Source: Macrostomum lignano
Lineage: Eukaryota
Length of the DNA: 64,000 nt
Direction: 5' to 3'
NCBI GenBank assembly: GCA_002269645.1
Contig: NIVC01001379.1
Span: forward strand, 124,001-188,000
Notes under the pieces: generated by a model
Seen by the model: only the letters and a program-made list of their open reading frames with translations
Databases searched by the model: none
What the model was told of the DNA's origin: nothing
Shown here: piece after piece, positions 2,898-63,277 of the stretch
Position numbering within the stretch: position 1 is the stretch's first letter
How the letters are laid out: each line of letters starts with the position of its first letter
Made by a program: the position numbers and the translations under genes

Positions 2898-10659
<7,762 letters not shown>

Positions 10660-35925: not shown

Positions 35926-38900
35926 ATGGCAGCCAACTTTCTCTCACTGCCCCCACCTGAGCCATTTTCAGTATCAGCAGACCCACACAACGCGGGCAAG
36001 CGCTGGAGTCAATGGGCAGACCGCTTTGAAGACTTCATCGATGCATCAGGCATCACCAACGAGAAGCAAAAGTGCAAACTACTCAGCTACACAGCAGGCA
36101 AGGAAATCGCCGACATCATCCGCGAGGAGGCCAAGCCTGCAGCGGCCACAGAGGACGGCCAAGTCACCCTCAAGCAGACGCTGGAAGCTTTGAAGACATT
36201 CTTCAACGGAAGAAAGAACATAGTATTCGCCAGATATCAGTTCCGCCTATGCACCCAGGCCACCGGGGAGTCCATCGAGTCCTGGTACGCCAGACTGCGC
36301 ACTGCGGCAGAGCCGAGCGACTTCGAGAAGCTGAAGGACTCGCTCATCAGAGACCAGCTCGTGGCAACCTGCAGCTCTGACAAGCTGCGCAGGCGGCTGC
36401 TTCAGGAGGCGAACATCAGCCTGGAAGAGGCCTTGCGAAAGGCGAGGGCATTCGAGGCTGCTGAGGAACAAGCCACCGAGATGGAGAAGACAGACTCGCA
36501 CGTGGCCAGCGTTGCCAAGGGCGACAAGGTGAGAACAAACAGGTGTGGCCCGGCTCAGACGACCAGCAGGCCCGGCGACCAGCAGCAGCGCACCTGCTAC
36601 CGCTGCGGCGAGAAAGGCCACGCTACCTGCGACGCTGCCAAGGGCAAGATCTGCCACAACTGCGGCAAGCCCAACCACCTCGCTCTTGCCTGCCGTCAGC
36701 CTCGGCAGTCAAACAGCAGCCGGATCCCACAGCAGCAAATCAGCACCAATGCTGTATTCACAGCTGCCGACGGCTCCGTCAACGAGGATGTGTTCGCGCT
36801 GTACAACCGCGACAAATACCCATCCGACGTCTCACTGACTGTGCAGGTGGCAAACCGGCAGCTTCCCATGATGATTGACAGCGGAGCCAGCTGCAGCATC
36901 ATGAGTCTCGGCACCTTCAGAGCGCTCAGCCTGCCAAGCCCACGCCCAACAAGAGCCGAAGTTCGCGCCTACGGGGTACCGACACCTCTCAGGATTGTGG
37001 GTACCGCCGATCTTGACATCCAAGTGGGATCTGCCAGAACAACCGCGACCTTCCACATCATGGACGGCGACGGGCTGACGATACTAGGGCGTCAGCCCGC
37101 ATTCAAGCTAGGAGTGCTGAAGATCCAGCGACCTGAAGCTACCAAGCCGCAAAACATAAACGCCATCGCCGACACCACACCCTCCGAGCAGTGTAGCGAC
37201 CCCCAGCTCAAGGCCATCCTGCAGAGGCACAAAGAAGTCTTCAACGGACGAGCTCAAGGCTTTGGAAGAGCAAGGCATCATTGAGGCAGTCAAAGGTCCT
37301 AGCGCCTGGGTGTCACGCATGGTGGTGGTGCCCAAGGGCGACGGTGGCGTTCGAATCTGCCAGGACCTCCGTGATCTCAACGCTTTCGTCATCCCAGAGA
37401 AGCAGCAAATCCCCACGCTGGACGAAATCACCGAGGAAATAGCAGACGCCAAGCTGTTCAGCGAACTCGATATCCGGAAGGCTTTTTATCAGATCCCAGT
37501 CCACGAGAGCAGCCGTCACCTCTTCACCTTCAGCACGCCCCTCGGACTGATGCGGCTCAAGAGGTTCAGCATGGGGTTCACAAATGCCTCGGAAATCCTT
37601 CAACGAGTCATGCTTGGCATCCTCAGCGGCATCGACGGCGTCCGGTGGGCGCACGACGACGTGGTGGTATACGCCTCCGACCTGAAGCAGCACCATGAGA
37701 GGCTGGACGCCTGCCTTCAGCGCCTCCGAGAGTTCGGGATCACCATCAATCAGGACAAGTGCAGGTTCGCCCGACCGACTGTCGAGTTTCTCGGGATGCG
37801 CCTGACCGCCCGGGGCATGCAACCGGCCACCGAGAAAATTGACGCCATGCAGAACTTCCGAGAGCCCTCCAACGTGGCCGACGCCCGCTCTTTCCTGGCA
37901 AAGTCATCCCAAACTTCGCTGACCTCGCGGCCCCACTCCGGCAGCTAACGAAGAAGGGCCAGGCCTGGGAGTGGACAGAAAAACACAAAGCGGCGTTCAA
38001 CGGCATCAAGAAGGCATTCTCAGACGCGGACACGCTGGCCTTTTTCGACCGCAGGCTGCACACGGAGCTCCTGGTGGACGCATCGCCGATCGGCCTCGGC
38101 GCCATCCTCACGCAGCGGCAGCCAGACGGCAACAGCAGACCCGTCGCCTACGCCAGCAGAGCCCTCTCGCCGGTGGAGCAGCGGTACGCGCAGATCGAGC
38201 GGGAGGCGTTGGCCATCAAATTTGGGTGTCTCAAGTTTGAGCACTATCTGGCTGGCGACCCAGACTTCACCGTGGTGACGGACCACCGACCGCTCGTGCC
38301 GCTTTTCAAGCCTGGCTCCCGTCCGCCACCGCGGATTGAGCGTATGGCACTGCGCATTCAGCATCTCCGCTTCAACCTGCTCTACCGGCCAGGCTCGACC
38401 AACCTGGCTGACCTGCTGAGTCGGCAGCCACTGCCAGAGCGGCGTCGGAATGTCGGTGAAGAGCTCGACGCCGCCTTCATCAACGCCGCGTCGACCGGGG
38501 CCGTGCCGAAGGGCTTCAGTCTCGACCAGGTTCGGGAAGCATCGCTCACCGACAGGGACGTCCAGGCGGCGCTGAACGCGATTCGAACCGGCCGCTGGGA
38601 CATGCGAGCGGCGGCCCAGCGCTCCTTCAAGTCCATCAGCAGCGAACTGTCGGAAAGCGACGGAGTATTACTCCGCGGTGACCTCATCGTCATCCCCGAG
38701 TCGCTGCGCAGGCCGATCCTTCAACTGGCGCACACCGGTCATCTGAGCGCCGACCGCACCCTTAAACGCCTGCAGACGAAGGTGTGGTGGCCTCGGATGC
38801 GCAGCGACTGCGAGCTCTTCGTCCAGTGCTGCACACTGTGCCAGGCTGCGGCCACCGGATTGCGACAGACACCATTGAGGCCGACAGATATTCCGGACGG

Positions 38901-41389
38901 TGCCTGGCTGCTGCTAGGTATGGATTTCTACGGCCCAGTGCAGGGCCAGATGCTCCTGGTCACCACCGACTTGTATTCAAAATACCCAGAAGTCAATTTT
39001 CTCAACTCGACGACGGCGGAGAGCGTGATCCCCCACCTGCGGAGGCTGTTCGGCAGATACGGCGTCCCGATTGAGGTGGTCACCGACAACGGCCCGCCAT
39101 TCAGCTCGGCAGCTTTCCGCAGCTAATTCCTCGCTTCGTACGGCATTCAACACCGCCTCATCTGCCCGCTGCACCCAGAATCCAACGGAGCGACGGAGCG
39201 AGTCAACCGCAGCATCGGGAAAGTGATTCAGACGGCAGTGGCCGAAGGTCGTAACTGGCGGGAGGCTATCGAGGACTGGCTGTTGGCGTTCCGCACGACA
39301 CCACATCGAGCGACCGGCCGCGCACCCGCTGAGCTACTCATGGGCAGGACGATGAACGACGGCATCCCGACCATCAAACCATCACAGCTCATCGACGTTA
39401 ACCATGAAGAGGTGCAGAGCTGGCACAGAAACTATGTCCAAGACATGAAGGCGCGCTTCGATGATCGCAAGGGTGTCAAAGAGCACGGCGTCAGAGTCGG
39501 CAACAAAGTTCTGCGAAAGAAGCAACCACGTAACAAACTGCAGCTGCCGTTGGAGCCACATCCTTGGACAGTCAAGCAGGTCCAGGGAGACACGTGTGTC
39601 CTGCAACGCGGCGAACAGTCCTGCATGCGCCACGTCTCGCAGCTGCGGCCCCTGGTCGGAGACCCTGCCGGCCAACCTGCCGGAGAGCCTGCCGGCCAGC
39701 CTGCCGGCCAGCCTGCCGGCCAGCCTGCCGGCCAACCTGCCGGAGAGCCTGCCGGAGAGCCTGCCGGCCAACCTGCAGGAGAGCCTGCCGGCCAGCCTGC
39801 CGGAGAGCCTGCCGGCCAACCTGCCGGCCAGCCTGCCGGAGAGCCTGCCGGCCAGCCTGCCGGCCAACCTGCAGGAGAGCCTGCCGGCCAGCCTGCCGGA
39901 GAGCCTGCCGGCCAGCCAGGTCCAGGTCCAGGGAGACACGTGTGTCCTGCAACGCGGCGAACAGTCCTGCATGCGCCACGTCTCGCAGCTGCGGCCCCTG
40001 GTCGGAGACCCTGCCGGCCAACCTGCCGGAGAGCCTGCCGGCCAGCCTGCCGGCCAACCTGCCGGAGAGCCTGCCGGAGAGCCTGCCGGCCAACCTGCAG
40101 GAGAGCCTGCCGGCCAGCCTGCCGGAGAGCCTGCCGGCCAACCTGCCGGCCAGCCTGCCGGAGAGCCTGCCGGCCAGCCTGCCGGCCAACCTGCAGGAGA
40201 GCCTGCCGGCCAGCCTGCCGGAGAGCCTGCCGGCCAGCCTGCCGGCCAACCTGCCGGCCAGCCTGCCGGCCAACCTGCCGGAGAGCCTGCCGGCCAACCT
40301 GCAGGAGAGCCTGCCGGCCAGCCTGCCGGAGAGCCTGCCGGCCAGCCTGCCGGCCAGCCTGCCGGCCAGCCTGCCGGCCAACCTGCCGGAGAGCCTGCCG
40401 GCCAACCTGCAGGAGAGCCTGCCGGCCAGCCTGCCGGCCAACCTGCCGGAGAGCCTGCCGGCCAACCTGCAGGAGAGCCTGCCGGCCAACCTGCCGGCCA
40501 GCCTGCCGGCCAACCTGCAGGAGAGCCTGCCGGCCAGCCTGCCGGCCAACCTGCCGGAGAGCCTGCCGGCCAACCTGCAGGAGAGCCTGCCGGCCAGCCT
40601 GCCGGCCAACCTGCCGGAGAGCCTGCCGGCCAGCCTGCAGGAGAGCCTGCCGGCCAGCCTGCCGGCCAACCTGCCGGAGAGCCTGCCGGCCAGCCTGCCG
40701 GAGAGCCTGCCGGCCAACCTGCCGGCCAACATGCCGGAGAGCCTGCCGGCCAACCTGCAGGAGAGCCTGCCGGCCAGCCTGCCGGCCAACCTGCCGGAGA
40801 GCCTGCCGGCCAACCTGCAGGAGAGCCTGCCGGCCAACCTGCCGGCCAGCCTGCCGGCCAACCTGCAGGAGAGCCTGCCGGCCAGCCTGCCGGCCAGCCT
40901 GCCGGAGAGCCTGCCGGCCAACCTGCAGGAGAGCCTGCCGGCCAGCCTGCCGGCCAACCTGCCGGAGAGCCTGCCGGCCAACCTGCAGGAGAGCCTGCCG
41001 GCCAAACTGCCGGCCAGCCTGCCGGCCAACCTGCAGGAGAGCCTGCCGGCCAGCCTGCCGGCCAACCTGCAGGAGAGCCTGCCGGCCAGCCTGCCGGCCA
41101 ACCTGCCGGAGAGCCTGCCGGCCAGCCTGCCGGAGAGCCTGCCGGCCAGCCTGCCGGCCAGCCTGCCGGCCAACCTGCCGGAGAGCCTGCCGGCCAACCT
41201 GCCGGAGAGCCTGCCGGCCAACCTGCAGGAGAGCCTGCCGGCCAACCTGCCGGAGAGCCTGCCGGCCAACCTGCAGGAGAGCCTGCCGGCCAACCTACCG
41301 GTCAGCCCGCCGGTCTATCCAGCGGTAGCATCGCCACGCGAGAACACCAAAGAGCTGCCCGTAACAGAGTGCTCAGCTACAAATTGTGA
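35926..41389 (+). pseudogene. Disrupted gag-pol polyprotein of the Gypsy element
   Basis: Zinc knuckles CYRCGEKGH and CHNCGKPNHLALAC; protease MIDSGAS; RT (RICQDLRDLN, WAHDDVVV); RNase H (VDASPIGLGAIL, YAQIEREALA); integrase HHCC and DFYGP/TDNGPPF/ERVNR. Lesions: deletion and frameshift near 37248 and 37898, in-frame TAA at 39124, and a tail duplication near 39920. Confidence 0.92.
39664..41308 (+). repeat. 12-bp coding minisatellite encoding (PAG[Q/E])n in the integrase C-terminal tail
   Basis: Roughly 130 units of CCTGCCGGCCA(A/G), CCTGCCGGAGAG or CCTGCAGGAGAG, split by a duplicated 90-bp unique segment. Confidence 0.95.
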
Positions 41390-46973: not shown

Positions 46974-47306
46974 TCAGGGCAGGAAGGCCGGCCTGATGAC
47001 CCACTCGGGGGTGCCGGCAGGAATCGGCCGCTGACTCCGGGTGGCCTCGTCGCGGACGCACTTGCCGAGCTGGGCGCGCTGCTTCACCGTGGCAAAGCGG
47101 CGCATGAACGCCTCGTCAAGGCTCCGCTTGATGTCGCGCACCCGGTCAGACTCCCAGGCCAGACAGCGGACTCGCAGCGTCTCGTCCTCTTCTTCCTCAT
47201 CTGATGAGGTCAGATCGCGGGTGAGCACGATTCGGTAATGCTCAAGATCGTCAGGCGACAGGTTCGGCAGTAGAGTCTCGAAGGCCTTCTGACGGCGGCT
47301 CAGCTT
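46974..47306 (-). CDS. Gene B terminal constant exon (phase-0 acceptor)
   Basis: Pyrimidine tract ...CCTAAATATGCAG|AAG CTG AGC; open to TGA at 46974. Confidence 0.8.
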   Translation of the reverse strand, partial: KLSRRQKAFETLLPNLSPDDLEHYRIVLTRDLTSSDEEEEDETLRVRCLAWESDRVRDIKRSLDEAFMRRFATVKQRAQLGKCVRDEATRSQRPIPAGTPEWVIRPAFLP

Positions 47307-50300
47307 CTGCATATTTAGGTACAGGAAGGTAGAGAAGCGGTATGAACTACTGTAAGTAGCGAAATTGAATTTTACATATTTTCAAAAATTTTACTTCATA
47401 AAATATTTCCAAACAGCTGAAATTGATAAATATTAGGTGTTAAATTGACGGGGCAAAATCCGACAGTGTGGAATCTGGCACAAACTAGGTAGGTCATGGT
47501 GAATGACCACAGAATGATCCTTTTGATAAGCATCAATAAATTCAATGATATTCAATGATATTGCTGACTGAGTAGCAGAGCTCACTCAGAGACATTGGGG
47601 ATTGAGTAGCGGAGCTCACTCATGGACATTGGGGATTGAGTAGCGGAGCTCACTCAGGGACATTGGGGATTGAGTAGCGGAGCTCACTCAGGGACTCACT
47701 CATGGACATTGGGGATTGAGTAGCGGTGCTCACTCAGGGACATTGGGGATTGAGTAGCGGTGCTCACTCAAGGACATTGGGGACTGAGTAGCGGTGCTCA
47801 CTCAGGGACATTGGGGATTGAGTAGCGGAGCTCACTCAGGGACTCACTCAAGGACATTTGGGATTGAGTAGCGGTGCTCAATCAGGGACATTGGGGATTG
47901 AGTACCCAGAGCTCACTCAGGGACATTGAGCATTGAGTAGCTCAGTCACTCAGACTCTCCAACCAGTAGCAAGACTCTCTCACCCGCTTCCATCTGCCAC
48001 TCTTTGCAGCAGACTTTCTACGCACAATAATCCACTTAAGTTCGTAAGCAAAGTATTTTGAAATTTTGCCTGAAAATTGAATTATCAGAATTAATCTATT
48101 TTCAAGCAGAGTATAAAAAGCAAAAAACTTACAATACTATTCAAGCGAGTTTGCCATGTCAGCCCAAAAGAGCTACGTTTAAATTTTTTATATTTAATAA
48201 GACCTGATGGCACAAAAACTTTTTTTATTTAGTAGATCATTTTAAGTTTTAGGACTACTTGCATTAGTACATGTGTATGCAGAAGATGGAAACAGTGTAG
48301 GTACCCAAGGCCCAGTGTCAATGTACATTTGTGGGGCTTGTGCCAGTTCAGTGGGGGAAGGGAGACACTGTACGGTAAGGGAAGGCCCAGTGTCAATGTA
48401 CATTGGTGGGGCTTGTGCCAGTTCAGCGGGGAAGGGAGACACTGTACGGTAAGGGAAGGCCCAGTGTCAATGTACATTGGTGAGGCTTGTGCCAGTTTAG
48501 CGGGGAAGAGAGACAGTGTACGGTAAGGGAAGGCCCAGTGTCAATGTACATTGGTGGGGCTTGTGACAGTTCGGCGCGGGGAGAGACAGTGTACAAAAAG
48601 TCGAGGCCCAGTGTCAATTTACACTTGAAAAAAATCTAGTCAAAAACCGATCTGGAAGGATGCCTTGTGGCTGTTTTAAATTCTCATAATTACCGACTTC
48701 ACTCGATAAGAGCGCCAGGCACGCCTTCGCTTATCCATAACAAATTTTCTCTCCGAGTCAAATGACGTCTTCATCTTGTCGCTGGCAGCTGGGGGAATCG
48801 ATTTGTAATAGATAATAACACAAATAAAATTTACAGTGGGAGACTAAAGCTAGCAAGGGCAGAGATTGACAGAGACAGGCAGCTTAAGACAGGCAACTGA
48901 CCACGCGCAATCGGGCAGACTTTCTGGCTGTCCGCCGGTTGTACAAAATCATATGGGCCAATCGGCTGTGAAAAATTTCCACGTTAGCTAAAATAATTAT
49001 AATAGCAATATAATTGATATACAGATAACTGCAGTAATTAGCGCACAAGCCCACACTGAAAATGCTGCTGCCTTAAAAAACGCTGCAATATGAATTTGAT
49101 AATTCCTATCGTCCAAATTTTGAATAATGCTGTTTTTAGCTTGCAAGTGGGAGATGGCTATAAGCATTGAATATTAATTAAATGGAAATTGTCATTGAAA
49201 CCTTAAAAACCTCCAGGAACTCCATCTCCGCACACACAGTGCACATCGCAGATACTATGCCACTCAGGCATATTCAATACATACTTAGTAAAACAGCTTT
49301 CTACTTTCAGTTCAGTAGCAAAGAAGAATACATAAGCTATTTTATAAGAATAAAGGCCGCTGAAATGACTTTGATAAGTTTAGAAGCCCAAGCTTGCAGG
49401 CGTAAACAATTTGCTAGCTAATTAGTTAAGCAGTAATGTACATTAGCCAGTCCACTGAAATGTACATGGCAGCTTTAGGCTGGAATTCCGAGAAAGGCAA
49501 TAAAAATTGGGCGTAGTGTGTAAAGGGGGCTGTTGGAGGGTTTAAGCTAGGGGGGTAAGAGCCAATAAAAAGAGCCTTGGCTTTAAAAATACCATAAAAT
49601 GCTTCTGTTTAGCTAACTACTGAACTGAAAGTAGTTTATACGAAACGTGCTTTGTGGCCCATCTAGTTATTATCTATCTCACGTAGATCTTTGGTGCACA
49701 CACAGACAAACTGGCAGGCCACACACATCTCCCAACACAGGCACTAACCACGCGGAGTCGGCCAGCTCGTTTAGCAGTTCTCCGATTAGACAATACAATA
49801 TTGCCCAGCCGCCTGTGGAACTGTTCTGTGCTGGCTAAAATATTTCATGAGAAAATATTTATATATACATATATGCTAATGTATATAGATCTGCTTTTAA
49901 AAGCAAATTAGCAGAATGCTGTCACAGTGCTGCCAAAAAAAACGCTGCTGCTTTTTTATTTAAAAAATAATTGCATGGTGGAGTTGTGTTTTAAACTGCC
50001 TCAGAGGCCAGGGACCACTGGAAGGTCAGGTGCTCAGGACTAACCTAGCTGTTCAGTCTCAGGTGTTCAGGACTAACCTAGCTGTTCAGTCTCAGGTGTT
50101 CAGGACTAACCTAGCTGTTCAGTCTCAGGTGTTCAGGACTAACCTAGCTGTTCAGCCTCAGGTGCTCAGGACTAACCTAGCTGTTCAGTCTCAGGTGTTC
50201 AGGACTAACCTAGCTGTTCAGTCTCAGGTGTTCAGGACTAACCTAGCTGTTCAGCCTCAGGTGTTCAGGACTAACCTAGCTGTTCAGCCTCAGGTGCTGA

Positions 50301-53300
50301 GGACTAACCTAGCTGTTCAGTCTCAGGTGTTCAGTCTCAGGTGTTCAGGACTAACCTAGCTGTTCAGTCTCAGGTGTTCAGGACTAACCTAGCTGTTCAG
50401 TCTCAGGTGTTCAGTCTCAGGTGTTCAGGACTAACCTAGCTGTTCAGTCTCAGGTGTTCAGGACTAACCTAGCTGTTCAGTCTCAGGTGTTCAGGACTAA
50501 CCTAGCTGTTCAGTCTCAGGTGTTCAGGACTAACCTAGCTGTTCAGTCTCAGGTGTTCAGGACTAACCTAGCTGTTCAGTCTCAGGTAGGTTTTCAGGAT
50601 TTCTAGAATTAATCAAAACGTCCTACTAAATAACCAGCTTACACTTTTTGTTCTGAACCATTTCTTAGCACTTTTGCGATGCTTCTCAATGGCAATGCGC
50701 TGAGCTGTGAACCAGGCGGAACAAGTCTCTAGTTTAAAAAAGTTATTAAGGTAAAAAAAATTTTTAAAAGACGACGCTAAAAGCAGAGCCTATTCACAAC
50801 CATAGCGTCAAAGAGGTTTCAACAGAAACAAAAAGATTTCACCCCATACTACTACAAGTAGGCAGCTTACATTACGAATTCGACCGGATTTTTTTGCACT
50901 TTTACGATTTCTCTGCACTGTAACGCTCTGCGATTGAAACCACGTGAGTAGCTTGTCCGTCAGCTCTGACGCGTCATTAAAATATTATTCAATAAAGCTA
51001 GTTGAATAAAGATTAGCTAATTCTGAGAAATTATAGATATCGCGTTGTAGAGGCTTGCGTGCAATAGAAAATATTGAAAAAATAAGTTTTTTATTAAAAA
51101 CACCAGGAATTTACTGTTTTCCATCGTTTGGATCGTTTGGCACTGATTCTATGCTTAGCCATGGTGACGCCCTGGGTGACAAAATATCTATTGATTGCGC
51201 CTGACGGATTGCGGCGGGGTGTTGCACCTTTAAAACACTTATTTAACAATATAAACAGCAAATGGCAGCAAACCGCCTGCTGAACAGAAAGATAATAGAG
51301 CGCGTTGAAGAGGCAATTTTCACAACTTACAGCCTTTTGCCTGTTACTCTTGCGCCAAATTAATCTGGAACGCAAACTAGACTGCTGCAGGAAACCGTAT
51401 TCCTTCTGACACGTGGCTGCGTGAGTGCGGAATATTTGTTTCTTAGAATTTATATTTAAATATCGTTTCTTATAACATACTTTAATAAAACAAGCTATGA
51501 TCTCAAAATGGCTCGTTTCACAAACTCTCAAAGCTTTCGCTATTGATTTGATTTTATAAATGTAATTTTAGAAAAAAATCTGTTGTTTCGAAGTTTCCGG
51601 ATATTGTAATCTCTTAATTGTAGATGACTAGCGTCTGTCTAAATGCACATAGGGTTGGGGGTGGGACTAGGCACAGTATTCTGTGGGACTAGCGTCTGTC
51701 TAAATGTACATAGGGTTGGGGTGATGACTAGCGTCTGTCTAAATGTACATAGGGTTGGGGTGATGACTAGCGTCTGTCTAAATGTACATAGGGTTGGGGT
51801 GATGACTAGCGTCTGTTTAAATGTACATAGGGTTGGGGTGATGACTAGCGTCTGTCTAAATGTACATAGGGTTGGGGTGATGACTAGCGTCTGTCTAAAT
51901 GTACATAGGGTTGGGGGTATGACTAGCGTCTGTTAAATGTACATAGGGTTGGGGTGGACTAGCGTCTGTCTAAATGTACATAGGTTGGGGTGATGACTAG
52001 CGTCTGTTAAATGTACATAGGGTTGGGGTATGACTAGCGTCTGTCTAAATGTACATAGGGTTGGGGTGATGACTAGCGTCTGTCTAAATGTACATAGGGT
52101 TGGGGGTAATGACTAGCGTCTGTCTAAATGTACATAGGGTTGGGGGTGGGACTAGCGTCTGTCTAAATGTACATAGGTTTGGGGGTGATGACTAGCGTCT
52201 GTTTAAATGTACATAGGGTTGGGGTGATGACTAGCGTCTGTTAAATGTACATAGGGTTGGGGTGATGACTAGCGTCTGTCTAAATGTACATAGGGTTGGG
52301 GGTAATGACTAGCGTCTGTTTAAATGTACATAGGTTTGGGGGTGAACTCAAAAGACGGTCACGTGATTCTACGATCTGGAAGCCTCAACAAAAGATTTTT
52401 TAAATACACGACTGAATTATTTAATAGCTTTTCCACCTTACTTGCGCACCTTTTCAATCATCTTTGAATTTCTTAAACTGGATTCCCCCAGCATTAAATA
52501 TCGACTTGATTGACTGAGTTTTTAAAACTACCAGGTTAGCTAGTATCTTAAATATAATGAGATTTATAGCATTAGCAGAAGTCTACAAAATCGGAGCACA
52601 TTATACTATTATTATCACTAATATAATACAATTTGTGGGACAATAAATATGACTACAACATTGAAGCCAATGCACAGAGGCCTGGTGAACCCCCCGGTTC
52701 CAGCAACTCGCTTGGCATGCTAAATCAATCGGAGCCGAGACTCACCATTGTTCGCCTGTAAAATTTGGCCACATTCCTACGATTAGACAGAACTGGCTGC
52801 CTATACTGTGAGTAGACGGAGCTTAGCACGGCTGCAAAATAGGCGATTGTGAGTGCCGAGAGATGCTCAGCTGTGCTGCTGCGACTGGGCTTGCGTTGCT
52901 TAATGTCTGATTAGCACTGCGGCTTGGCCCAGTGGGAGGCTGGCCCAGCAACTGAGGATCTGGGAGGCTGGCCCAGCAACTGAGGATCTGGGAGGCTGGC
53001 CCAGCAACTGAGGATCTGGGAGGCTGGCCCAGCAACTGAGGATCTGGGAGGCTGGCCCAGCAACTGACACTCTGGGAGGCTGGCCCAGCAACTGAGGATC
53101 TGGGAGGCTGGCCCAGCAACTGAGGATCTGGGAGGCTGGCCCAGCAACTGAGGATCTGGGAGGCTGGCCCAGCAACTGACACTCTGGGAGGCTGGCCCAG
53201 CAACTGAGGATCTGGGAGGCTGGCCCAGCAACTGACACTCTGGGAGGCTGGCCCAGCAACTGACACTCTGGGAGGCTGGCCCAGCAACCGAGGATCTGGA

Positions 53301-54511
53301 AGGCTGGCCCAGCAACTGAGGATCTGGGAGGCTGGCCCAGCAACTGAAGATCTGGGAGGCTGGCCCAGCAACTGACACTCTGGGAGGCTGGCCCAGCAAC
53401 TGAGGATAAGGGAGGCTGGCCCAGCAACTGAGGATCTGGGAGGCTGGCCCAGCAACTGAGGATATGGGAGGCTGGCCCAGCAACTGAGGATAAGGGAGGC
53501 TGGCCCAGCAACTGAGGATCTGGGAGGCTGGCCCAGCAACTGAGGATCTGGGAGGCTGGCCCAGCAACTGAGGATCTGGGAGGGTGGCCTAGCAACTGAG
53601 GATCTGGGAGGGTGGCCTAGCAACTGAGGATCTGGGAGGCTGGCCCAGCAACTGAGGATCTGGGAGGCTGGCCCAGCAACTGAGGATCTGGGAGGCTGGC
53701 CCAGCAACTGAGGATCTGGGAGGCTGGCCCAGCAACTGAGGATCTGGGAGGGGGCCCATGTACACGTAAGTCTAGTATTCGCTATAAAAGTCTGTCTAAA
53801 TCTGCAGATTTTTAAGAAGTGTTGCAAGCATAACGCAAAACTCAAATCGGAATCCAACAGCAAACATGAGAGCCAACAAGCCTACACCAACTGACGCTAA
53901 ATAGTATAGTTGAAGAAAACGACAAACAAAATGTTAAATTTATAATTTTAGGGAATAATTAATTAGGATAATTAATGCATACAATGGGCCGCACTTCTTG
54001 AACAGCCGGGACGCCAAAGTTCTGGCGCAGTGGGAGTCTGCACACCAATTTTAGAACCAAGTAGTGTATGTAGCTCAATATAAATTGCATTGACTCAATA
54101 AATTTTTACGATTATAAATCTGAGACACCTGGGCAGCGGCAATTATAACTAATTTTAAGCGATTTTTACGGCAGACTTGCAAACACTCGCTGGTTTCTTT
54201 CTTTCTCTGTAAACCTCTGCAACGCTATAGCTTAATAATTCAATTGAATACGGCAGTATAAGTTCATTTAAATAGACATGTAACATACAGGTAAGAAATG
54301 CAGTAAATATTAATTAACTTACTGCGCCAAACTTCAGCGTTTGCTGCAATGCGCGCGACACAGCCTGGGCCTGATCGATTACTTTCTTGGCCACCATCTG
54401 ATTCATCGGGTGCTCGAAGCTGAGCAAATTGGAGTGGCGTTGGGTTGGCTGCCTGTCTGTCTGTGTGTGTCTGTCTGTTCTGTCTGTCTGTCTGTCTGTC
54501 CGTCTGTCTGT

Positions 54512-54582
<71 letters not shown>

Positions 54583-54774
54583 TAGTGTCTGTGTGTCTGT
54601 CTTAGTGTCTGTGTGTATGTCTGTCTTAGTGTCTGTGTGTATGTCTGTCTTAGTGTCTGTGTGTATGTCTGTCTTAGTGTCTCTGCGTGTCTGTCTTAGT
54701 GTCTGTGTGTCTGTCTTAGTGTCTGTGTGTATGTCTGTCTTAGTGTCTGTGTGTATGTCTGTCTTAGTGTCTTG

Positions 54775-54809
<35 letters not shown>

Positions 54810-57247
54810 GTCTGCCTGTCTGTGTGTCTGTCTGTCTGTGTGTCTGTCTGTCTGCCTGTCTATCTGTCTGTCTGTCTGTCTGTGCGGCAGCATGAAGCAA
54901 AGGCACAACTCACGGTTTAGCAAAGTCGAACAGGTGTGGTCCGCTGCCTCGCAAATTCTTATAAGTGTCCTTCAGAAGATTCTGGAATTCCCAAGACATT
55001 CAAAGTAATTATATATAAAAACATTAACTTTTTATTGGGTCACTGGCTCAATCCCATATTTTAAGAAATTTTTTGAACAAGAATTGCATTCTACATTAGC
55101 TACTACGAGGGGCGTACCGAAAGTTTTGAGATACGCCGAAACCACAAATATCTGAAGCAAAATTTCTGTCACAATTTTTTGAAGTAGTTGCCACCAGCTT
55201 GCACGCATTTCCTCATCCGGTGAAACCACTGCGTTCAGGCTCCAGCCCACTGTTCTTCTGGCACTGCTGACACCACCTGCTCGAACTCGAATCTTGCTGC
55301 TTTAGGGCTCTCAAACCGAGTCCCACGCAGTTGGATCTTCACCAAAGGGAAGGGAAAGAAGTCGCAGGGTGCCAGGTCAGGGAATATGCTGGATGCGTCC
55401 AACTGGACTTCATTCTCGGCCAGAAATGCCAATGTTGCAACAGCCATGTGCGCACTGGCATTGTTGTGGTGCAGCAGCAGGCCACGAAGTCCGGTGCGCA
55501 GCCGGCGTCTGCGCCACGCATCGAGCACGAGCGGCAGGCACTGGTTAGTATACCAGTCGGCATTGACTGTCCGCCTGTTTTGGAGCGCTACAGTCGCCAA
55601 TTGGCCGGCCTGGCTGAAGAAAGTCGCCACCATCTGCTTCCCGACGCTGCGGGCCCGCTTAACTTTCGTTGGAGTGGCATCGTCCGGAAGGAGCCAAACT
55701 GCAGAATGCTGCTTGGTTTCCGGGTCGTGCTGGCAGACCCAGGTCTCTTCGCCACTGATGATCTCCCAGCATCACTTTGAAGTCCCAGAATCAAATCTTT
55801 CCAGCATAAACTCGCACCAAAGCACCCTCTCCGCTTTCTGGTCCTCCGTTAGGTTGTGGGCACCCAGCGGGCACACCGCTTGGAGGCTCCCAGCTTGTCG
55901 TGCAGGATGGTCGTAACTGCTGCCGATCCAATGCCGAGAGCCTCTCTGACCTATGCACAGGTCACTCGCCGGTCCTCGTCAATCATTCTTCGGACAGCAG
56001 CGATGTTTTCGTCCGTGACAGCGGAAGCTGGACGTTCCGTCCGAGGCTCGTCATCAAGGCTGCTTCGGCCCCACTTACATTCGCTGTACCACCGAAAAAA
56101 CTATGGCACGTGAAGGGGCTTGATCTCCAAAGACAGCATGTAAAGTTTCAACGCACTGCTCCTACGTGAGACCTTTTCGCTGGTTGTAAACAATCATGAC
56201 TCGAAAGTCGCGATTTGTCACTTCATTGGAGCAAGTACAGTTTGGTAGGGGGTATCGTTTTTAAGGATGTGATTGTGAAAGATTGACAAAAGCGCAAAGG
56301 CTGAAAATTAATACTCAATCATCTTAAAGGTGGTACAGTATGTAAATAAAAATTCGTGCAGTTGTGATTTATGAGTCAGCCGTATCTCAAAACTTTCAGT
56401 ACGCCCCTCGTATAGTTAATAGCTAGCTAGTAGCTAGGCCTTTCCATTTGCTTATTTCCGCTACACTGACTGCTACAAGAGCTCCATGAAATGCTTTCGC
56501 TACGTTCATTAATTAACAAGCCAGGCTGTCTATCTAATAAGGAAGAGAACTGAGAGTTTTCAATAAATTTAATTCATACTACTCAGAAAGTTCATATGGT
56601 AAGTAGGCAGTGCGAATTTTAACTCTTTTTTGGCACTCACCCGAACATCCACGTTGCTGGGGCCGCCAGCAGCGCAAGCGCCGGCGCCGCCGCTGAAGCT
56701 GCTCTCCTCCTCCAGCAGCAGACAGTCGTCGTCTTCGTCGTCCCCGGGAAACGATGAGGCTCCCCCAGCATCGCTAGCAAAGCTGTCAACGTGGCCGAGA
56801 GTCTGCTGATGAAGCTGCTGGTGCTGCTGTTCCAGCTTCACGCCGAGTAGCGGCTCCTTCGGCTCCAATTTGCACGCGCCGCTTTGCCGACGGCGGACTG
56901 GCGCCATCGCCGGCGCCAGCAGCAGCGGCAGCACTGGAGCAACTGGCCGCGGCTGAGTGATGCTGGCGGAGACTCTGCTGCTGCTGTTGCAGCTGCTGCA
57001 GCTGTTCCTGCAGCTCCCGATTGGAGGACTGCACCTGACCAGCGCACGGCTGCATCACATCAACAGCCTGGTGCTGCAGGTTGCAGATGAGGCGCACAGC
57101 GGCCACCAGTTCGTCCAGCGTCATGCTGTCCAGCAGCATGCCGGCATTGAGCAGAGTGGACTCAAACAGGGTCAGCGCGGAGAATGAGGACTGAGCAGCT
57201 GACGGCTGCTGCTGATGATGGATAGGTAGCACGGATGCGGCAGACAT
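46974..57247 (-). CDS. Gene B: C14orf93/DUF4616-like protein with a mutually exclusive cassette array. Constant exons 57247-56641, 54981-54914 and 54419-54323, one cassette, then terminal exon 47306-46974.
   Basis: Spliced product ...[40 protein letters not shown]...AANAEVWR-[cassette][10 protein letters not shown]...LTSSDEEE...[16 protein letters not shown]...RSQRPIP. This follows the FDFS...YF..RR...MSDEE..P..R...L..LD pattern I recall for C14orf93-type domains. Needs 1-nt corrections near 56873 and 54351. Confidence 0.72.
47570..47945. repeat. 34-bp minisatellite in the gene B cassette region
   Basis: (GAGTAGCGGAGCTCACTCAGGGACATTGGGGATT)n. Confidence 0.9.
47984..48069 (-). CDS. Gene B cassette exon B9 (86 nt, phase 1 to 0): (S)[28 protein letters not shown]
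   Basis: TTTTCAG| ... |GTGAGA; open frame; YF followed by a basic tail. Confidence 0.8.
48133..48203 (-). CDS. Gene B cassette exon B8 (71 nt, phase 1 to 0): (S)[23 protein letters not shown]
   Basis: CCATCAG| ... |GTAAGT; open frame; shorter and more divergent than the others. Confidence 0.55.
48300..48620. repeat. About 70-bp tandem repeat in the gene B cassette region
   Basis: Recurring GGCCCAGTGTCAATGTACATTGGTGGGGCTTGTGCCAGTTCAG. Confidence 0.85.
48694..48788 (-). CDS. Gene B cassette exon B7 (95 nt, phase 1 to 0): (T)[31 protein letters not shown]
   Basis: TTCCCCCAG| ... |GTAATT; the only open frame. Confidence 0.75.
48902..48987 (-). CDS. Gene B cassette exon B6 (86 nt, phase 1 to 0): (T)[28 protein letters not shown]
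   Basis: ATTTTAG| ... |GTCAGT; clear paralogue of B5. Confidence 0.82.
49749..49834 (-). CDS. Gene B cassette exon B5 (86 nt, phase 1 to 0): (T)[28 protein letters not shown]
   Basis: ATTTTAG| ... |GTTAGT; paralogue of B6 and B1. Confidence 0.82.
50030..50590. repeat. 33-bp minisatellite (CAGGACTAACCTAGCTGTTCAGTCTCAGGTGTT)n
   Basis: Tandem units visible directly. Confidence 0.95.
50643..50728 (-). CDS. Gene B cassette exon B4 (86 nt, phase 1 to 0): (K)[28 protein letters not shown]
   Basis: TTTTTAAACTAG| ... |GTAAGC; open frame. Confidence 0.82.
50871..50965 (-). CDS. Gene B cassette exon B3 (95 nt, phase 1 to 0): (K)[31 protein letters not shown]
   Basis: GCGTCAG| ... |GTAAGC; open frame; shares RKSAKK with B4. 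Confidence 0.8.
51115..51200 (-). CDS. Gene B cassette exon B2 (86 nt, phase 1 to 0; alternative in-frame acceptor at 51227): (S)[28 protein letters not shown]
   Basis: CCGTCAG| ... |GTAAAT; open frame. Confidence 0.8.
51620..52340. repeat. 39-bp minisatellite (ATGACTAGCGTCTGTCTAAATGTACATAGGGTTGGGGTG)n
   Basis: Tandem units visible directly. Confidence 0.95.
52746..52831 (-). CDS. Gene B cassette exon B1 (86 nt, phase 1 to 0; possible longer in-frame form including ...LTIAYFAA): (T)[28 protein letters not shown]
   Basis: TATTTTGCAG| ... |GTGAGT; shares VLSNRR with B5. Confidence 0.78.
52930..53755. repeat. 28-bp minisatellite (CTGGGAGGCTGGCCCAGCAACTGAGGAT)n
   Basis: Tandem units; source of the spurious 52823-53863 ORFs. 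Confidence 0.95.
54323..54419 (-). CDS. Gene B constant exon immediately upstream of the cassettes (ends in phase 1: TGG CGC A|GTAAGT)
   Basis: [23 protein letters not shown](F)AANAEVWR aligns with gene A YSARANVLAANRVIDKALELSRHKPANVEAWR if TT near 54351 is TTT. Confidence 0.7.
54450..54880. repeat. (TCTG)n compound microsatellite in a gene B intron
   Basis: Tandem units visible directly. Confidence 0.95.
55106..56410 (-). mobile_element. Degenerate mariner (Tc1/mariner) DNA transposon, 1305 bp, in gene B intron 1
   Basis: 30-bp TIRs CGAGGGGCGTAC(C/T)GAAAGTTTTGAGATACG with TA on both sides. Transposase remnants RWVPHNLT, ETW, LLHHNNA and PDLAPCDFF, with stops and frameshifts. Confidence 0.93.
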
Positions 57248-59112: not shown

Positions 59113-59416
59113 NNNNNNNNNNNNNNNNNNNNNNNNNNNNNNNNNNNNNNNNNNNNNNNNNNNNNNNNNNNNNNNNNNNNNNNNNNNNNNNNNNNNNNNN
59201 NNNNNNNNNNNNNNNNNNNNNNNNNNNNNNNNNNNNNNNNNNNNNNNNNNNNNNNNNNNNNNNNNNNNNNNNNNNNNNNNNNNNNNNNNNNNNNNNNNNN
59301 NNNNNNNNNNNNNNNNNNNNNNNNNNNNNNNNNNNNNNNNNNNNNNNNNNNNNNNNNNNNNNNNNNNNNNNNNNNNNNNNNNNNNNNNNNNNNNNNNNNN
59401 NNNNNNNNNNNNNNNN
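59113..59416. other. Assembly gap (304 N)
   Basis: Run of n; it truncates the gene A terminal exon. Confidence 1.
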
Positions 59417-62400
59417 TTGGGCAGACGGATCCAGCTCGTCCTTAATGAGCTCGTAGCTCTTCTGCGCCTGTTCAGCTTCTATAGGCGGACAGTGGAATTG
59501 GCAGGTTGGTTATCCAGGTTAATTGCATAAAGCGGCCGAGTGTGAAGAATGGAGCATCCACTCTCATCATTGCAGAGGAGTGACACACTAATATGAAAAG
59601 TGAAACAGTCACTGCAGAGGAGTGACACACATAATATGGAGAGTGAAACAGTCATTGCAGAGGAGTGACACACTAATATGGAGAGTGAAACAGTCACTGC
59701 AGAGGAGTGACACACAAATATGAAGAGTGAAACAGTCACTGCAGAGGAGTGACATACTAATATGAAGAGTGAAACAGTCACAGCAGAAGAGTGACACACT
59801 AATATGGAGAGTGAAACAGTCACTGCAGAGGAGTGACACACTAATATGAAAAGTGAAACAGTCACTGCAGAGGAGTGACACACTAATATGGAGAGTGAAA
59901 CAGTCACTGCAGAGGAGTGACACACTAATATGGAGAGTGAAACAGTCACTGCAGAGGAGTGACACAATATGAAGAGTGAAACAGTCACTGCAGAGGAGTG
60001 ACATACTAATATGAAGAGTGAAACAGTCACAGCAGAGAGGAGTGACACACTAATATGAAGAGTGAAACAGTCATTGCAGAGGAGTGACACACTAATATGG
60101 AGAGTGAAACAGTCACTGCAGAGGAGTGACACACTAATATGGAGAGTGAAACAGTCACTGCAGAGGAGTGACACACTAATATGAAGAGTGAAACAGTCAC
60201 TGCAGAGGAGTGACACACTAATATGGAGAGTGAAGCAGTCACTGCAGAGGAGTGACACACTAATATGGAGAGTGAAGCAGTCACTGCAGAGGAGTGACAC
60301 ACTAATATGAAGAGTGAAACAGTCATTGCAGAGGAGTGACACACTAATATGGAGAGTGAAACAGTCACTGCAGAGGAGTGACACACTAATATGGAGAGTG
60401 AAACAGTCACCGCAGAGGAGTGACACACTAATATGGAAAGCGAAACACCTACAACTGAGACACAGAGCGAGATCAGGTGGAGATAGTACATGCAGTAAAA
60501 TCGCAGGAGTGGCGCAACGTCTTTGGCAACAACGGCCCACATCTGTTACTAAGGCAACTCAGCCCATTTCGCTGACTCCTGAGGCTAAGATTCGGAAAAT
60601 CGTAGAAAAAAATGCCATTAAATGGCGAGCAGGTGAAAAATCACAGACCATTAATCGCCGTATGAATCGCTGGGTGTCCACATTCTTAACAACATTTCTG
60701 AACGGATACTTGAGATTCTTGGCGTAATAGTAGCGAAAGTACTTCACTGCTAGGGCTAAAAACAAACAAACAAGGATAGATAACCAACGCTAGACGCATT
60801 CGGATTAGAGAATGGCAGGACGGGCTGGTGCAGGCTGGTGGCTTCTATCTGGCCTATCCTAGCTTCTTTTTCTTCTTCAAAAATTCAAAACAGATTTAAC
60901 AAACGCACCAGACTCTGCCGCACGATATTCATTGTGTCAAGCTCGCGTTTGCGCAGCTTATAAGCCGAGCGCAAGTTTTTACTATAGTGGCCGCCGAAAT
61001 AACGCCTGGCTGCGTCTGAACAGTAATTCATTATGTATGATTATTAAGTTATCAATGTTCTAACTGGCTAGGTTCATTTGGATCGTTTGCAGGGCTGTTG
61101 TGCACTGTGCAGACAGCACAATATCTATTCCATTCCCAACTTTTAGCTGATAATTGGTCACGCGTTTGGCTAAAAATTATGAAGCTACGTTATGGTTACG
61201 AGTTATTCAACTATTTGTTTTAACTAAAATTGGCCTTAAAATCGGTGCAGCAAAGTGGCTGCGTATCATCTTGTACGAGTACAGCTACTTACCATTCTTT
61301 CTTTTCTGTGAACACTCACGAACAGTCGCAGTCATTCCCATTAGACACTCGCAATCCTTCCGTGAACAGTCGCAATCATTCCCGTGAACATTCGCAATCA
61401 TTCCCGTGAACAGTCGCAATCCTTCCCGTGAACAGTCGCAATCATTCCCGTGAACACTCGCAATCATTCCGTGAACAGTCGTAATCCTTCCCGTGAACAG
61501 TCGCAGTCATTCCCGTGAACAGTCGTAATCCTTCCCGTGAACAGTCGCAGTCATTCCCGTGAACAGTCGCAGTCATTCCGTGAACAGTCACAGTCATTCC
61601 CGTGAACAGTCGTAATCCTTCCGTGAACAGTCGCAGTCATTCCGTGAACAGTCGCAATCATTCCGTGAGACACTCACAAGTGAGGCTGATACGCGAAAAG
61701 AAGGCCGATGCCGTTTGAGATGCTGGTATTGCCAGTTCTTGAATACTGAGGACTGAGATAGCGATGGCTCTTGGCTGGACAAGCAAATTTAATTTAGCAT
61801 TGAGCTGTGTTGTTGCCTTTCAGAACTAGCAACAGGAAAACCCGAAGCGCTGGTACAAAAGAAGACTACAGGCATCGCAGGGTCTTGTGCGCTTAAATTG
61901 GAATTAGCTCTTTTACGGCATTGCTTACCAGAAACAGGTTGACAGAAGTTTTCATTTTCTCCTTCTGAAAGCCGTACTTCTGAGCCGGTTTCAAGGTGGA
62001 CGTATAATAAATCCGCAGGTATTTGTTGTAAACCGAGTCTGCGCGATAAGACCGCGTGCCAGCCGACGGTGCTTATGATTTCATTAATAATCCCAAAATC
62101 CCCCATTTCCCGAGCTGCACAACAGACTGTTGGGCAATTGGGCACGATTTGAGAGATTATAGCCAAATTTAGCTGATAATATTACAAAACTACTACTGCT
62201 GGCGATTATAATAAAATGCTAATTAGATAGTTGCGTCATACAAGGTTACGTAACAAGTGGCCAATGCATCGGCCATAGTGTTTGTCACAAGCATATTTAT
62301 TGAATTAGTTCACATTGCTAACTAACGGCCCTGCAACGCCCGTATTTTTAGAATATGCAATCAGGTGTACAGGTGTGGGAAATTGTACAACAATAGGCAA

Positions 62401-63277
62401 AATAATTAATATCCCTATGCATAAAAGTATTGTAAAGCAGGAATAAACTAATCGTATAGATACTAGAACCATCAAATAGATTATACGATATGTAGCGTAA
62501 ACAAATTTCTACACTACCAACCTTCTAGAGCAAATTACTTGCAATTATTGAACCCATTAACACTATAGTATGCCATAATATCGTCTACCGATATGTAGTG
62601 TAAACAACTTTCTGCACTACTAGCCTTCTATTGACATAAAGTTGACTACCGATATGTAGCGAATATTGATTTCTACACGACTTTCAATGAAAAAGTGCAG
62701 AATGGAGAAGCAGACTACTCACTGCGCCAGGCCTCAACATTAGCGGGCTTGTGCCTGCTCAGCTCCAGAGCCTTGTCAATAACCCGATTGGCTGCCAGCA
62801 CGTTGGCCCTGGCAGAATAGGGCGCGAGAAGTCGAACACGTTGGTGCCAGTCTCGTCTTTCAACACTCGATAGGCTTTGCGCAGGATGCCTTTCCATTCG
62901 TTTGACAGCTCGCCGCTAGCTGAAGAGTCCGCGCCGCCGCCTGCGCCACCAGCTCCGCGGCCACCGCTGAAGCTGGCCTGCTGATGCTGCTGCTGCTGGT
63001 ACAGCTGCTGGGACTGCGAGTGCTGATCGAAAATCAAATCGGCTTCCATCAGTACGCAATCGTCGTCGGAATCGATAATCTCGGGCTTAATTAAAGTTGA
63101 TGAAGCGGCTGCCGCAGTCGGACCGGTTGTTGCCAAGGCGCTATCTAGCAGCTTTTTACTACTGCTACTATTGCTACTGCTATTACCAACGTTGCCAATA
63201 GTGACAGCTGCCGAGCCCACAGAGGTTCCGGGCAGGTGAGAAGCGACTGACATTGACTGAGTAACCGGCGGTGGACA
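59417..63277 (-). CDS. Gene A: second C14orf93/DUF4616-like paralogue (5'- and 3'-partial). Constant exon 63277-62723 (phase-1 donor), one cassette, then constant exon from 59478 running into the gap.
   Basis: DDDCVLME...SFSGG...EWKGILRKAYRVLKDETGTNVFDFSRP(Y)SARANVLAANRVIDKALELSRHKPANVEAWR A|GTGAGT. Terminal exon TAG|KLNRR(Q)KSYELIKDELDPSAQ is homologous to gene [13 protein letters not shown]. Needs +1 nt near 62821 and 59467. Confidence 0.68.
59570..60440. repeat. 42-bp minisatellite (GAGTGACACACTAATATGGAGAGTGAAACAGTCACTGCAGAG)n
   Basis: Tandem units; source of several spurious ORFs. Confidence 0.95.
60649..60755 (-). CDS. Gene A cassette exon A4 (107 nt, phase 1 to 0): (T)LAVKYFRYYYAKNLKYPFRNVVKNVDTQRFIRRLM
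   Basis: TTTGTTTTTAG| ... |GTCTGT; open frame; KYF motif. Confidence 0.78.
60909..61015 (-). CDS. Gene A cassette exon A3 (107 nt, phase 1 to 0): (N)AARRYFGGHYSKNLRSAYKLRKRELDTMNIVRQSL
   Basis: CTGTTCAG| ... |GTGCGT; open frame; shares YF...Y.KNL with A4. Confidence 0.78.
61320..61670. repeat. About 22-bp minisatellite (TTCCCGTGAACAGTCGCAATCA)n
   Basis: Tandem units visible directly. Confidence 0.92.
61678..61774 (-). CDS. Gene A candidate cassette A2: either 61745-61678 (I)FKNWQYQHLKRHRPSFRVSASL, or 61774-61678 with +1 nt giving ...PQYFKNW...
   Basis: Ends in phase 0 at GTGAGT; acceptor choice is ambiguous. Confidence 0.45.
61929..62038 (-). CDS. Gene A cassette exon A1 (110 nt, phase 1 to 0): (N)SVYNKYLRIYYTSTLKPAQKYGFQKEKMKTSVNLFL
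   Basis: TTATCGCGCAG| ... |GTAAGC; open frame. Confidence 0.72.

Follow-up and report, generated by a model that had tools for sequence, protein, structure and literature searches.

To our knowledge, large clusters of mutually exclusive exons are rare outside the Dscam genes of arthropods. In the exon 6 cluster of insect Dscam1, according to the model of Graveley, homologous cassettes of the same phase lie in tandem, a docking site is located in the intron that directly follows the upstream constant exon, and selectors upstream of the variable exons compete for this one site, the pairings being supported by covariation (PMC6071210). An upstream docking site is a peculiarity of the Dscam exon 6 cluster, and among the genes of the Drosophila annotation surveyed, Dscam alone has clusters of more than eight exons (PMC6071210). 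The clusters of Drosophila MRP (8 exons), Mhc, 14-3-3zeta and srp and of mammalian ATE1 also originate from tandem duplication, contain exons of similar length and use competing base-pairings; most of them have the docking site downstream of the cluster (PMC6071210). A comparable array is described here from the flatworm Macrostomum lignano, in a stretch of 64,000 nucleotides (nt) referred to as the window (GenBank assembly GCA_002269645.1, contig NIVC01001379.1, positions 124,001 to 188,000 of the forward strand; all coordinates below are those of the window). A minus-strand gene, gene B, carries nine to ten cassette exons upstream of its terminal exon. These are likely to form a genuine mutually exclusive exon cluster, for which a choice by RNA pairing as in Dscam1 exon 6 is proposed. 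The array was first pointed out by a sequence-only reading of the DNA, made without database searches, which knew of no description in the family or in flatworms; as far as a literature search can tell, no such cluster has been described before in this phylum or protein family.

Gene B and its cassette exons

Gene B is composed of exons 1 and 2, the constant exon e3 and a terminal exon, with the tandem cassette array placed before the last of these. The exons are the following.

56641..57247, minus strand: exon 1, ATG at 57247, conserved N-terminal region and acidic patch; protein models P0002 and P0157 span it
54914..54981, minus strand: exon 2, encoding ..FDFAKP and ending in phase 2
54323..54419, minus strand: constant exon e3, ending in phase 1, donor GTAAGT; 2-nt insertion compared with the gene copy L001
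52746..52831, minus strand: cassette c1, 86 nt, good splice sites, marginal homology (p=0.16), no selector found
51331..51416, minus strand: cassette c10, 86 nt, absent from the sequence-only reading; the sole cassette in P0001, P0156 and P0159
51115..51200, minus strand: cassette c2, 86 nt; the sole cassette in the models P0002 and P0003, derived from RNA sequencing (RNA-seq)
50871..50965, minus strand: cassette c3, 95 nt, homologous to other cassettes
50643..50728, minus strand: cassette c4, 86 nt, homologous to other cassettes
49749..49834, minus strand: cassette c5, 86 nt, supported by homology and substitution rates
48902..48987, minus strand: cassette c6, 86 nt, supported by homology and substitution rates
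48694..48788, minus strand: cassette c7, 95 nt, or 86 nt through the donor GTGAAG at 48703
48133..48203, minus strand: candidate c8, 71 nt (86 nt with an acceptor at 48218), no homology and no selector
47984..48069, minus strand: cassette c9, 86 nt, homologous to other cassettes
46974..47306, minus strand: terminal exon, starting in phase 0, stop codon included

The spliced reading of the region is 86-100% identical to Macrostomum lignano proteins. The phase 1 end of e3 and the phase 0 start of the terminal exon had been called correctly from the letters: the e3 end (..AEVWR+A, GTAAGT at 54323) is matched in the neighbouring paralogue gene A (..VEAWR+A, GTGAGT at 62729), and in the proteins P0001 and P0002 the e3 peptide is followed by a cassette. 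Likewise, the nine segments originally listed all proved to have AG/GT borders, lengths of 3n+2 (six of 86 nt, two of 95 nt and one of 71 nt) and open phase 1 frames. The original count of at least nine cassettes held as to the existence of the array; it overlooked c10 (51416-51331) and included the doubtful c8. With c10 the cluster comprises seven cassettes of 86 nt and two of 95 nt, all of 3n+2 length, entered in phase 1, left in phase 0 and bordered by AG/GT. The first codon is completed by the A of e3, so the first residue of a cassette is T, S or K. Similar length, common phase and frame, and homology are marks expected of mutually exclusive clusters and are found in the array, and a frame-blind homology scan detected no cassette beyond the ten.

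Splice borders combined with an open frame were discarded as evidence. About 250 open AG..GT segments occur in the interval in every length and phase class, so this pattern is not significant by itself. The 86-nt length common to most cassettes does exceed chance, as do the homology of the peptides and the constraint on the protein.

Peptide homology was assessed against composition-preserving shuffles. It is significant for c2, c3, c4, c5, c6, c7, c9 and c10 (p<0.005) and marginal for c1, and for c8 it equals that of control segments (p~0.99), which makes c8 doubtful and probably not a real cassette; the earlier description of related peptides is therefore borne out for c2 to c7 and c9, left marginal for c1 and contradicted for c8. 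Between c5 and c6 the ratio of nonsynonymous to synonymous substitution rates (dN/dS) is 0.24 with a dS of 1.4, which points to constraint at the protein level. The other cassettes are saturated at synonymous sites, and among c2, c4 and c9 amino-acid identity still reaches 10-11 of 29 residues. Nine cassette copies are devoid of stops and indels despite being old duplicates. The cassettes appear to be old duplicates maintained under constraint.

The long introns of the array are nearly all occupied by minisatellites, each of a different kind, as listed here.

47569-47953: 34-mer
48307-48623: 74-mer
50026-50587: 33-mer, 17 copies
51687-52341: 39-mer, 17 copies
52933-53758: 28-mer, 29.5 copies
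54449-54883: (CTGT)n, 109 copies

Proposed pairing elements in the introns of gene B and its paralogues

A search of the introns for docking and selector complementarity had been suggested together with the array. Such complementarity is present, and it covaries between paralogues. The putative docking region occupies the intron 83-165 nt downstream of e3, and the complementary elements lie mostly 60-100 nt upstream of seven cassettes.

54196..54240, minus strand: docking site 1, 83-127 nt downstream of the e3 donor, core CGTTGCAGAGG
54158..54174, minus strand: docking site 2, CTGCCGTAAAAATCGCT, complementary to elements upstream of c5 and c6
52564..52598, minus strand: orphan selector-like element, predicted duplex with docking site 1 of -33.6 kcal/mol (z -4.2)
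51302..51313, minus strand: core of the c2 selector, CCTCTTCAACGC, 11/12 complementary to docking site 1, 101 nt from the acceptor
51029..51056, minus strand: c3 selector, ~63 nt from the acceptor
50802..50836, minus strand: c4 selector, 73 nt from the acceptor
49930..49946, minus strand: c5 selector, AGCGTTTTTTTTGGCAG, complementary to docking site 2, ending 95 nt from the acceptor
49068..49084, minus strand: c6 selector, AGCGTTTTTTAAGGCAG, complementary to docking site 2, 80 nt from the acceptor
48859..48878, minus strand: c7 selector, 70 nt from the acceptor, -34.6 to -37.7 kcal/mol
48090..48127, minus strand: c9 selector-like element, weak and interrupted (blocks CTCTGC and ATAG.TTAAT), 20 nt from the acceptor

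Seven of the ten cassettes are thus covered, c2, c3, c4, c7 and c9 by docking site 1 and c5 and c6 by docking site 2. Because RNAduplex runs on long docking and flanking sequences returned long loose structures that were unusable, they were replaced by local complement alignments and scans with windows of 45-50 nt. The complement of the docking site 1 core (12-mer, at most 2 mismatches) occurs 14 times where 5.4 occurrences are expected, the sites upstream of c2 and c3 among them. Among the local complement alignments to docking site 1, those before c3, c4 and c7 reach significance and that before c9 is weaker. The duplex energy of the docking site 1 45-mer was also scanned against all 6360 windows of the minus strand of the 64-kilobase (kb) stretch, and the top three distinct sites all fall in the array: c4 (-41.2 kcal/mol), c7 (-34.6 kcal/mol) and the orphan element (-32.8 kcal/mol). 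The z-scores range from -3.2 to -5.7 for c3, c4, c7 and the orphan element and are about -2 for c5 and c9. The orphan element lies between c1 and c10, 1.15 kb upstream of c10 with a satellite array intervening. For docking site 2, the whole window contains complements only before c5 and c6 (3 matches versus 0.10 expected, reached in 0/100 shuffles). The energy scan for this site was not distinctive owing to its AT-rich composition, and it is the pattern statistics that support it. A longer alignment of the c5 selector, reaching to 65 nt from the acceptor, is non-significant (p=0.32).

The same intron contains a GC-rich island.

54001..54039, minus strand: GC-rich intronic island, complementary to the 3' end of e3 and its donor (54348-54315)

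Situated 285 nt downstream, the island would form with the e3 donor region a duplex of -40.7 kcal/mol (z=-6), the best partner on the whole strand, and this duplex would bury the 5' splice site. Such a masking duplex was looked for in the paralogues and is absent from them; it is specific to gene B.

Gene A is an upstream tandem paralogue of gene B, also on the minus strand (window 62870-59478), with its own array and pairing elements.

62311..62343, minus strand: gene A docking site, core CGTTGCAGGGC, in the intron following the gene A constant exon (donor 62729)
60649..62038, minus strand: gene A cassette array, with cassettes at 62038-61929 (110 nt), 61015-60909 (107 nt), 60755-60649 (107 nt) and possibly 61769-61678
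61109-61087 and 60834-60820, minus strand: gene A selectors, 71 and 64 nt upstream of their acceptors

Its terminal exon (KLNRR(Q)KSYELIKDEL..) starts at 59478 and enters an assembly gap, a run of 304 N at 59113-59416. Gene A introns contain 22-mer, 42-mer and 49-mer arrays.

Arrays of same-length 3n+2 cassettes also occur in other paralogues: four of 77 nt in L008, three in L002 and two each in L006 and L007. Gene A has three or four, of 107-110 nt, and a single cassette is present in each of L003, L004 and L005. Different cassettes are found in P0173 and P0174, which derive from near-identical copies of one paralogue, and P0011 and P0180, as well as P0012 and P0152, differ in the same manner. 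Several cassette types are common to paralogues (c10 is like the cassette of P0005, c9 like the second one of L002 and c5 like that of P0006), so the diversity would be older than at least part of the gene duplication. Family paralogues also occur as head-to-tail tandem pairs at L002, L003 and L004, with the upstream gene on the same strand, as indicated by a weaker terminal-exon peptide match 2-4 kb upstream of the queried gene. In L006, the paralogue of P0174, the 3' part of the constant exon is present twice (3283-3450 and 3853-3930), 400 nt apart; this may be a duplicated constant-exon end or an alternative exon.

The docking site of L008, CGTCGCAAGTT, lies 80 nt after the constant exon, and its complement recurs before three of the four cassettes, at distances of 82, 76 and 60 nt; 4 matches are found versus 0.24 expected, and none of 200 shuffles reaches 4. 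In L002, two selectors converge on a different docking site. The docking site and most selectors keep their position relative to the splice sites in four genes. A covariation table was built from genes B, A and L008, which have homologous docking sites, each placed in register with its own selectors. In it 84% of cells are paired versus 34-48% in slid controls, the first figure being inflated by the choice of rows for complementarity within each gene. Ten of the 19 pairs change on both sides, and the observed score was reached by 0/500 shuffles. Features for which the rows were not chosen are that selectors fit the docking site of their own gene, that the docking sites are homologous and that most distances between elements and splice sites are kept.

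Transcript models, reading frame and rival readings

The BOX15 models of GenBank result from genome-guided RNA-seq assembly with StringTie and TACO, a pipeline in which dominant isoforms were kept (isoform-frac 0.75) and redundant ones dropped (PMC5730564); rare isoforms would consequently be missing from them. The RNA-seq-derived P0002 and P0003 contain c2 spliced between e3 and the terminal exon, and only the junction of c2 with the terminal exon, read in a shifted frame, can give their C-termini (..GKQS*). The UniProt models P0001, P0156 and P0159 contain c10 as sole cassette. In P0157 and P0158, also RNA-seq-derived, e3 is joined directly to the terminal exon, and P0182 shows the same direct join in a paralogue. 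The initial claim that exactly one cassette must be used overstates the case: the models with c2 or c10 contain one, and P0157, P0158 and P0182 use none. A search of the literature and expression data for these gene identifiers found nothing, and a protein search returned no Logan-derived isoform fragments for gene B.

As read from the exon phases, one cassette is needed for a full-length protein, since it restores the frame between the phase 1 end of e3 and the phase 0 start of the terminal exon. With two cassettes included, translation would stop inside the second of them or at the third codon of the terminal exon; with all skipped, it would stop 18 codons into the terminal exon, and the proteins encoded by P0157, P0158 and P0182 end early, after the constant exon. 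Because skip transcripts carry this stop in their last exon, they should escape exon-junction-dependent decay, which fits their presence in the assemblies. Cassette-skipping transcripts may be stable and may represent a regulated 'off' or dominant-negative isoform.

In the mechanism proposed for gene B, the docking region would pair with only one selector at a time. The pairing would bring the acceptor of the chosen cassette next to the e3 donor while the cassettes between them are looped out. The reading frame would act as a second filter, as transcripts with two or zero cassettes would run into a stop and yield a protein without the C-terminal domain. A productive messenger RNA (mRNA) would carry exactly one cassette, and the locus could then encode about nine proteins differing only in a helix segment. 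Nine cassettes are well or moderately supported, and their choice is probably governed by competing RNA pairings, as suggested by the position and covariation of the elements. The exon array with its homology and constraint, transcript models with one cassette or none, the covarying complementarity and the prediction of a helix are observed; the use of all cassettes, a role of RNA pairing in choosing among them and the function of the helix are inferred.

Several findings weigh against this explanation. Two of the four RNA-seq-derived GenBank models of near-identical gene B copies skip every cassette: single inclusion is not obligatory and may not give the main product. Transcript support covers c2, c10 and skipping, and the other seven putative cassettes are supported by their sequence. 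The search for selectors found none upstream of c1, c10 and c8, those of c2, c6 and c9 are weak by energy, and the resemblance of the selectors to one another stems in part from their duplication together with the exons. A search for docking and selector pairs in L006 and L007 gave nothing significant. Finally, the window copy is frameshifted in exon 1 and e3, and would be a pseudogene if these frameshifts were real.

The limited set of transcripts is what could be expected if most cassettes were unused relics of tandem exon duplication, with only c2 and c10 spliced, or skipping as the default, and a repertoire that is never expressed; the public transcript-derived models show nothing else, c8 looks dead or like a chance segment, and the homology of c1 is only marginal. 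We regard this as unlikely. Nine copies keep an open phase 1 frame, AG/GT borders and a 3n+2 length (exactly 86 nt in seven of them) despite synonymous saturation, when the chance of an open 29-codon frame is roughly 0.25 per copy, indels not yet counted. The dN/dS of c5 and c6 and the conservation of short intronic selector islands in introns that have otherwise diverged also speak against relics, and an annotation pipeline that favoured dominant isoforms would not display the rare ones.

The incomplete set of selectors bears on another reading, in which the exons are mutually exclusive through the frame and ordinary splice-site competition, and the complementarity is a by-product of duplication: the arm of an old stem-loop would have been copied with each exon and would have no present role. 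The selectors are homologous, as duplication of a unit predicts (model in PMC6071210), several cassettes lack a detectable one, and L006 and L007 have no docking and selector pair. Among genes B, A and L008, however, compensatory changes on both strands preserve the helix while its sequence changes, and across four genes the docking site and most selectors remain in place with respect to the splice sites. The frame alone would moreover leave skipped transcripts in place, because their stop lies in the last exon. This reading is judged quite unlikely, and choice by competing pairings is considered more probable.

The least probable of the readings considered is that the window copy is a pseudogene and that the array is being lost at this locus. 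Compared with the near-identical copy L001, exon 1 of the window has a 1-nt insertion at ~56880 that causes a frameshift, e3 has its 2-nt insertion at ~54355, and P0003 (BOX15_Mlig031385g2), which is annotated on the window sequence, follows the same frameshifted reading and is truncated. L001 is intact in exon 1 and e3 but has 1-nt deletions in A-runs of c2 and c4, and around every exon the two copies are otherwise identical, tandem repeats aside. By this pattern, the insertions of the window and the deletions of L001 are most likely assembly indels of the long-read type; gene A shows similar single-base problems at CC runs. As the copies are identical but for homopolymer indels, the comparison of exon with intron conservation between the window and L001 was uninformative.

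The predicted helix, the rest of the window and known systems

An exhaustive profile search retrieved 231 relatives at E<=0.001, oyster proteins included, which share at the cassette position the pattern F[ED]HP.NQ ... AC..YF.S.R....R...G....H....RR..R..KL.RR ... SSDE ... RVR.L.WES ... LD. The gene B product is a member of an uncharacterised metazoan protein family. The sequence-only reading had called it C14orf93/DUF4616-like, an assignment that found no support above threshold: one of ~92 homologues (P0135) matches DUF4616, with 18.6 bits (E=0.001) against a Pfam gathering threshold of 27 bits, and the Macrostomum members searched (P0001, P0004-P0007 and P0009) have no match to DUF4616 or to any other Pfam family. 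An AlphaFold2 run with a 48-sequence alignment gave a confident C-terminal domain (predicted local distance difference test, pLDDT, 80-98). Within it, one helix of ~49 residues runs from residue 180 to 228, and the cassette corresponds to residues 185-213 (pLDDT 88-98). The 29 residues encoded by the cassette would hence form the central part of this helix, placed where the conserved C-terminal domain begins, in agreement with the earlier suggestion that a helix is exchanged. A role of this helix in nucleic-acid recognition, also suggested at that time, found no support: Pfam searches with eight isoform constructs gave no family at E<=10 apart from noise, and Foldseek against the PDB gave no structural neighbour (best match E=0.064, template modelling score 0.13). 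The helix is basic and amphipathic, and partner binding, nucleic-acid binding or nuclear targeting are guesses as to its function. The array makes one helix the variable element of this widely conserved metazoan family, and the helix is therefore probably specificity-determining.

Elsewhere in the window, intron 1 of gene B contains a degenerate open reading frame (55235-56200, minus strand) that resembles by eye a mariner/Tc1-type transposase and has no Pfam match at E<=0.001. The coding region of a long terminal repeat (LTR) retrotransposon lies at 35926-39300 on the plus strand and continues to ~41400, with gag and its zinc knuckle, aspartyl protease, reverse transcriptase, RNase H and integrase domains. 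Next follows a long tandem repeat of high GC content, in which several frames are open (PAGQ/PAGE-type repeats).

Among proteins, the C14orf93/RTFC family (DUF4616) is similar to gene B in that P0135 is co-linear with profile positions 316-424, which include the FEHP..YF..basic region, and in that it too is an uncharacterised metazoan protein. It differs in that the score stays below the Pfam cut-off and in that the Macrostomum proteins and the other ~91 homologues have no match, and we know of no cassette array in C14orf93. In lola and mod(mdg4), as in gene B, one locus gives many isoforms with a common N-terminal part and a differing module of putative specificity. There, whole terminal zinc-finger or FLYWCH exons are swapped by alternative 3' exon choice or trans-splicing, whereas in gene B an internal helix segment of 29 residues is swapped and no nucleic-acid-binding domain is recognisable. 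MRP, Mhc, 14-3-3zeta, srp and ATE1 share with gene B the origin by tandem duplication, the similar exon length and the competing base-pairings, and most of them differ from it by their downstream docking site (PMC6071210). With 9-10 exons the gene B cluster is larger than any Drosophila cluster reported in that survey except those of Dscam.

Dscam1 exon 6 is paralleled in gene B by the tandem homologous cassettes of one phase, by the docking site just downstream of the upstream constant exon and by upstream selectors that would compete for it, with covariation in support of the pairings. A flatworm cluster of 9-10 exons with the layout of Dscam exon 6, recurring with compensatory changes in several paralogues, would show how readily this mechanism emerges once an exon has been tandemly duplicated together with its flanking intron. 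The set of paralogues would also serve as a compact natural covariation series, and as M. lignano is tractable by transgenesis, docking and selector mutations are testable in vivo. In a wider reading, which is unlikely, Dscam-like pairing would select one basic helix per cell or stochastically throughout a flatworm-expanded family that counts at least eight paralogues, five or six of which have arrays of 2-10 cassettes, and would yield dozens of factors with differing partner or nucleic-acid specificities; if true, this would be an independently evolved, RNA-structure-driven generator of diversity outside arthropods. The two systems also differ in several respects. Gene B has about 10 exons versus 48 in Dscam, belongs to Platyhelminthes, has two adjacent docking sub-sites and includes some exons with no detected selector; its pairing is predicted from sequence, and transcripts skipping all cassettes are seen. 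Its protein is of another family and contains an intracellular-looking helical domain, whereas Dscam swaps an immunoglobulin domain. Lastly, unlike in Dscam1, the 3n+2 length of the gene B exons means that the reading frame also penalises double inclusion.

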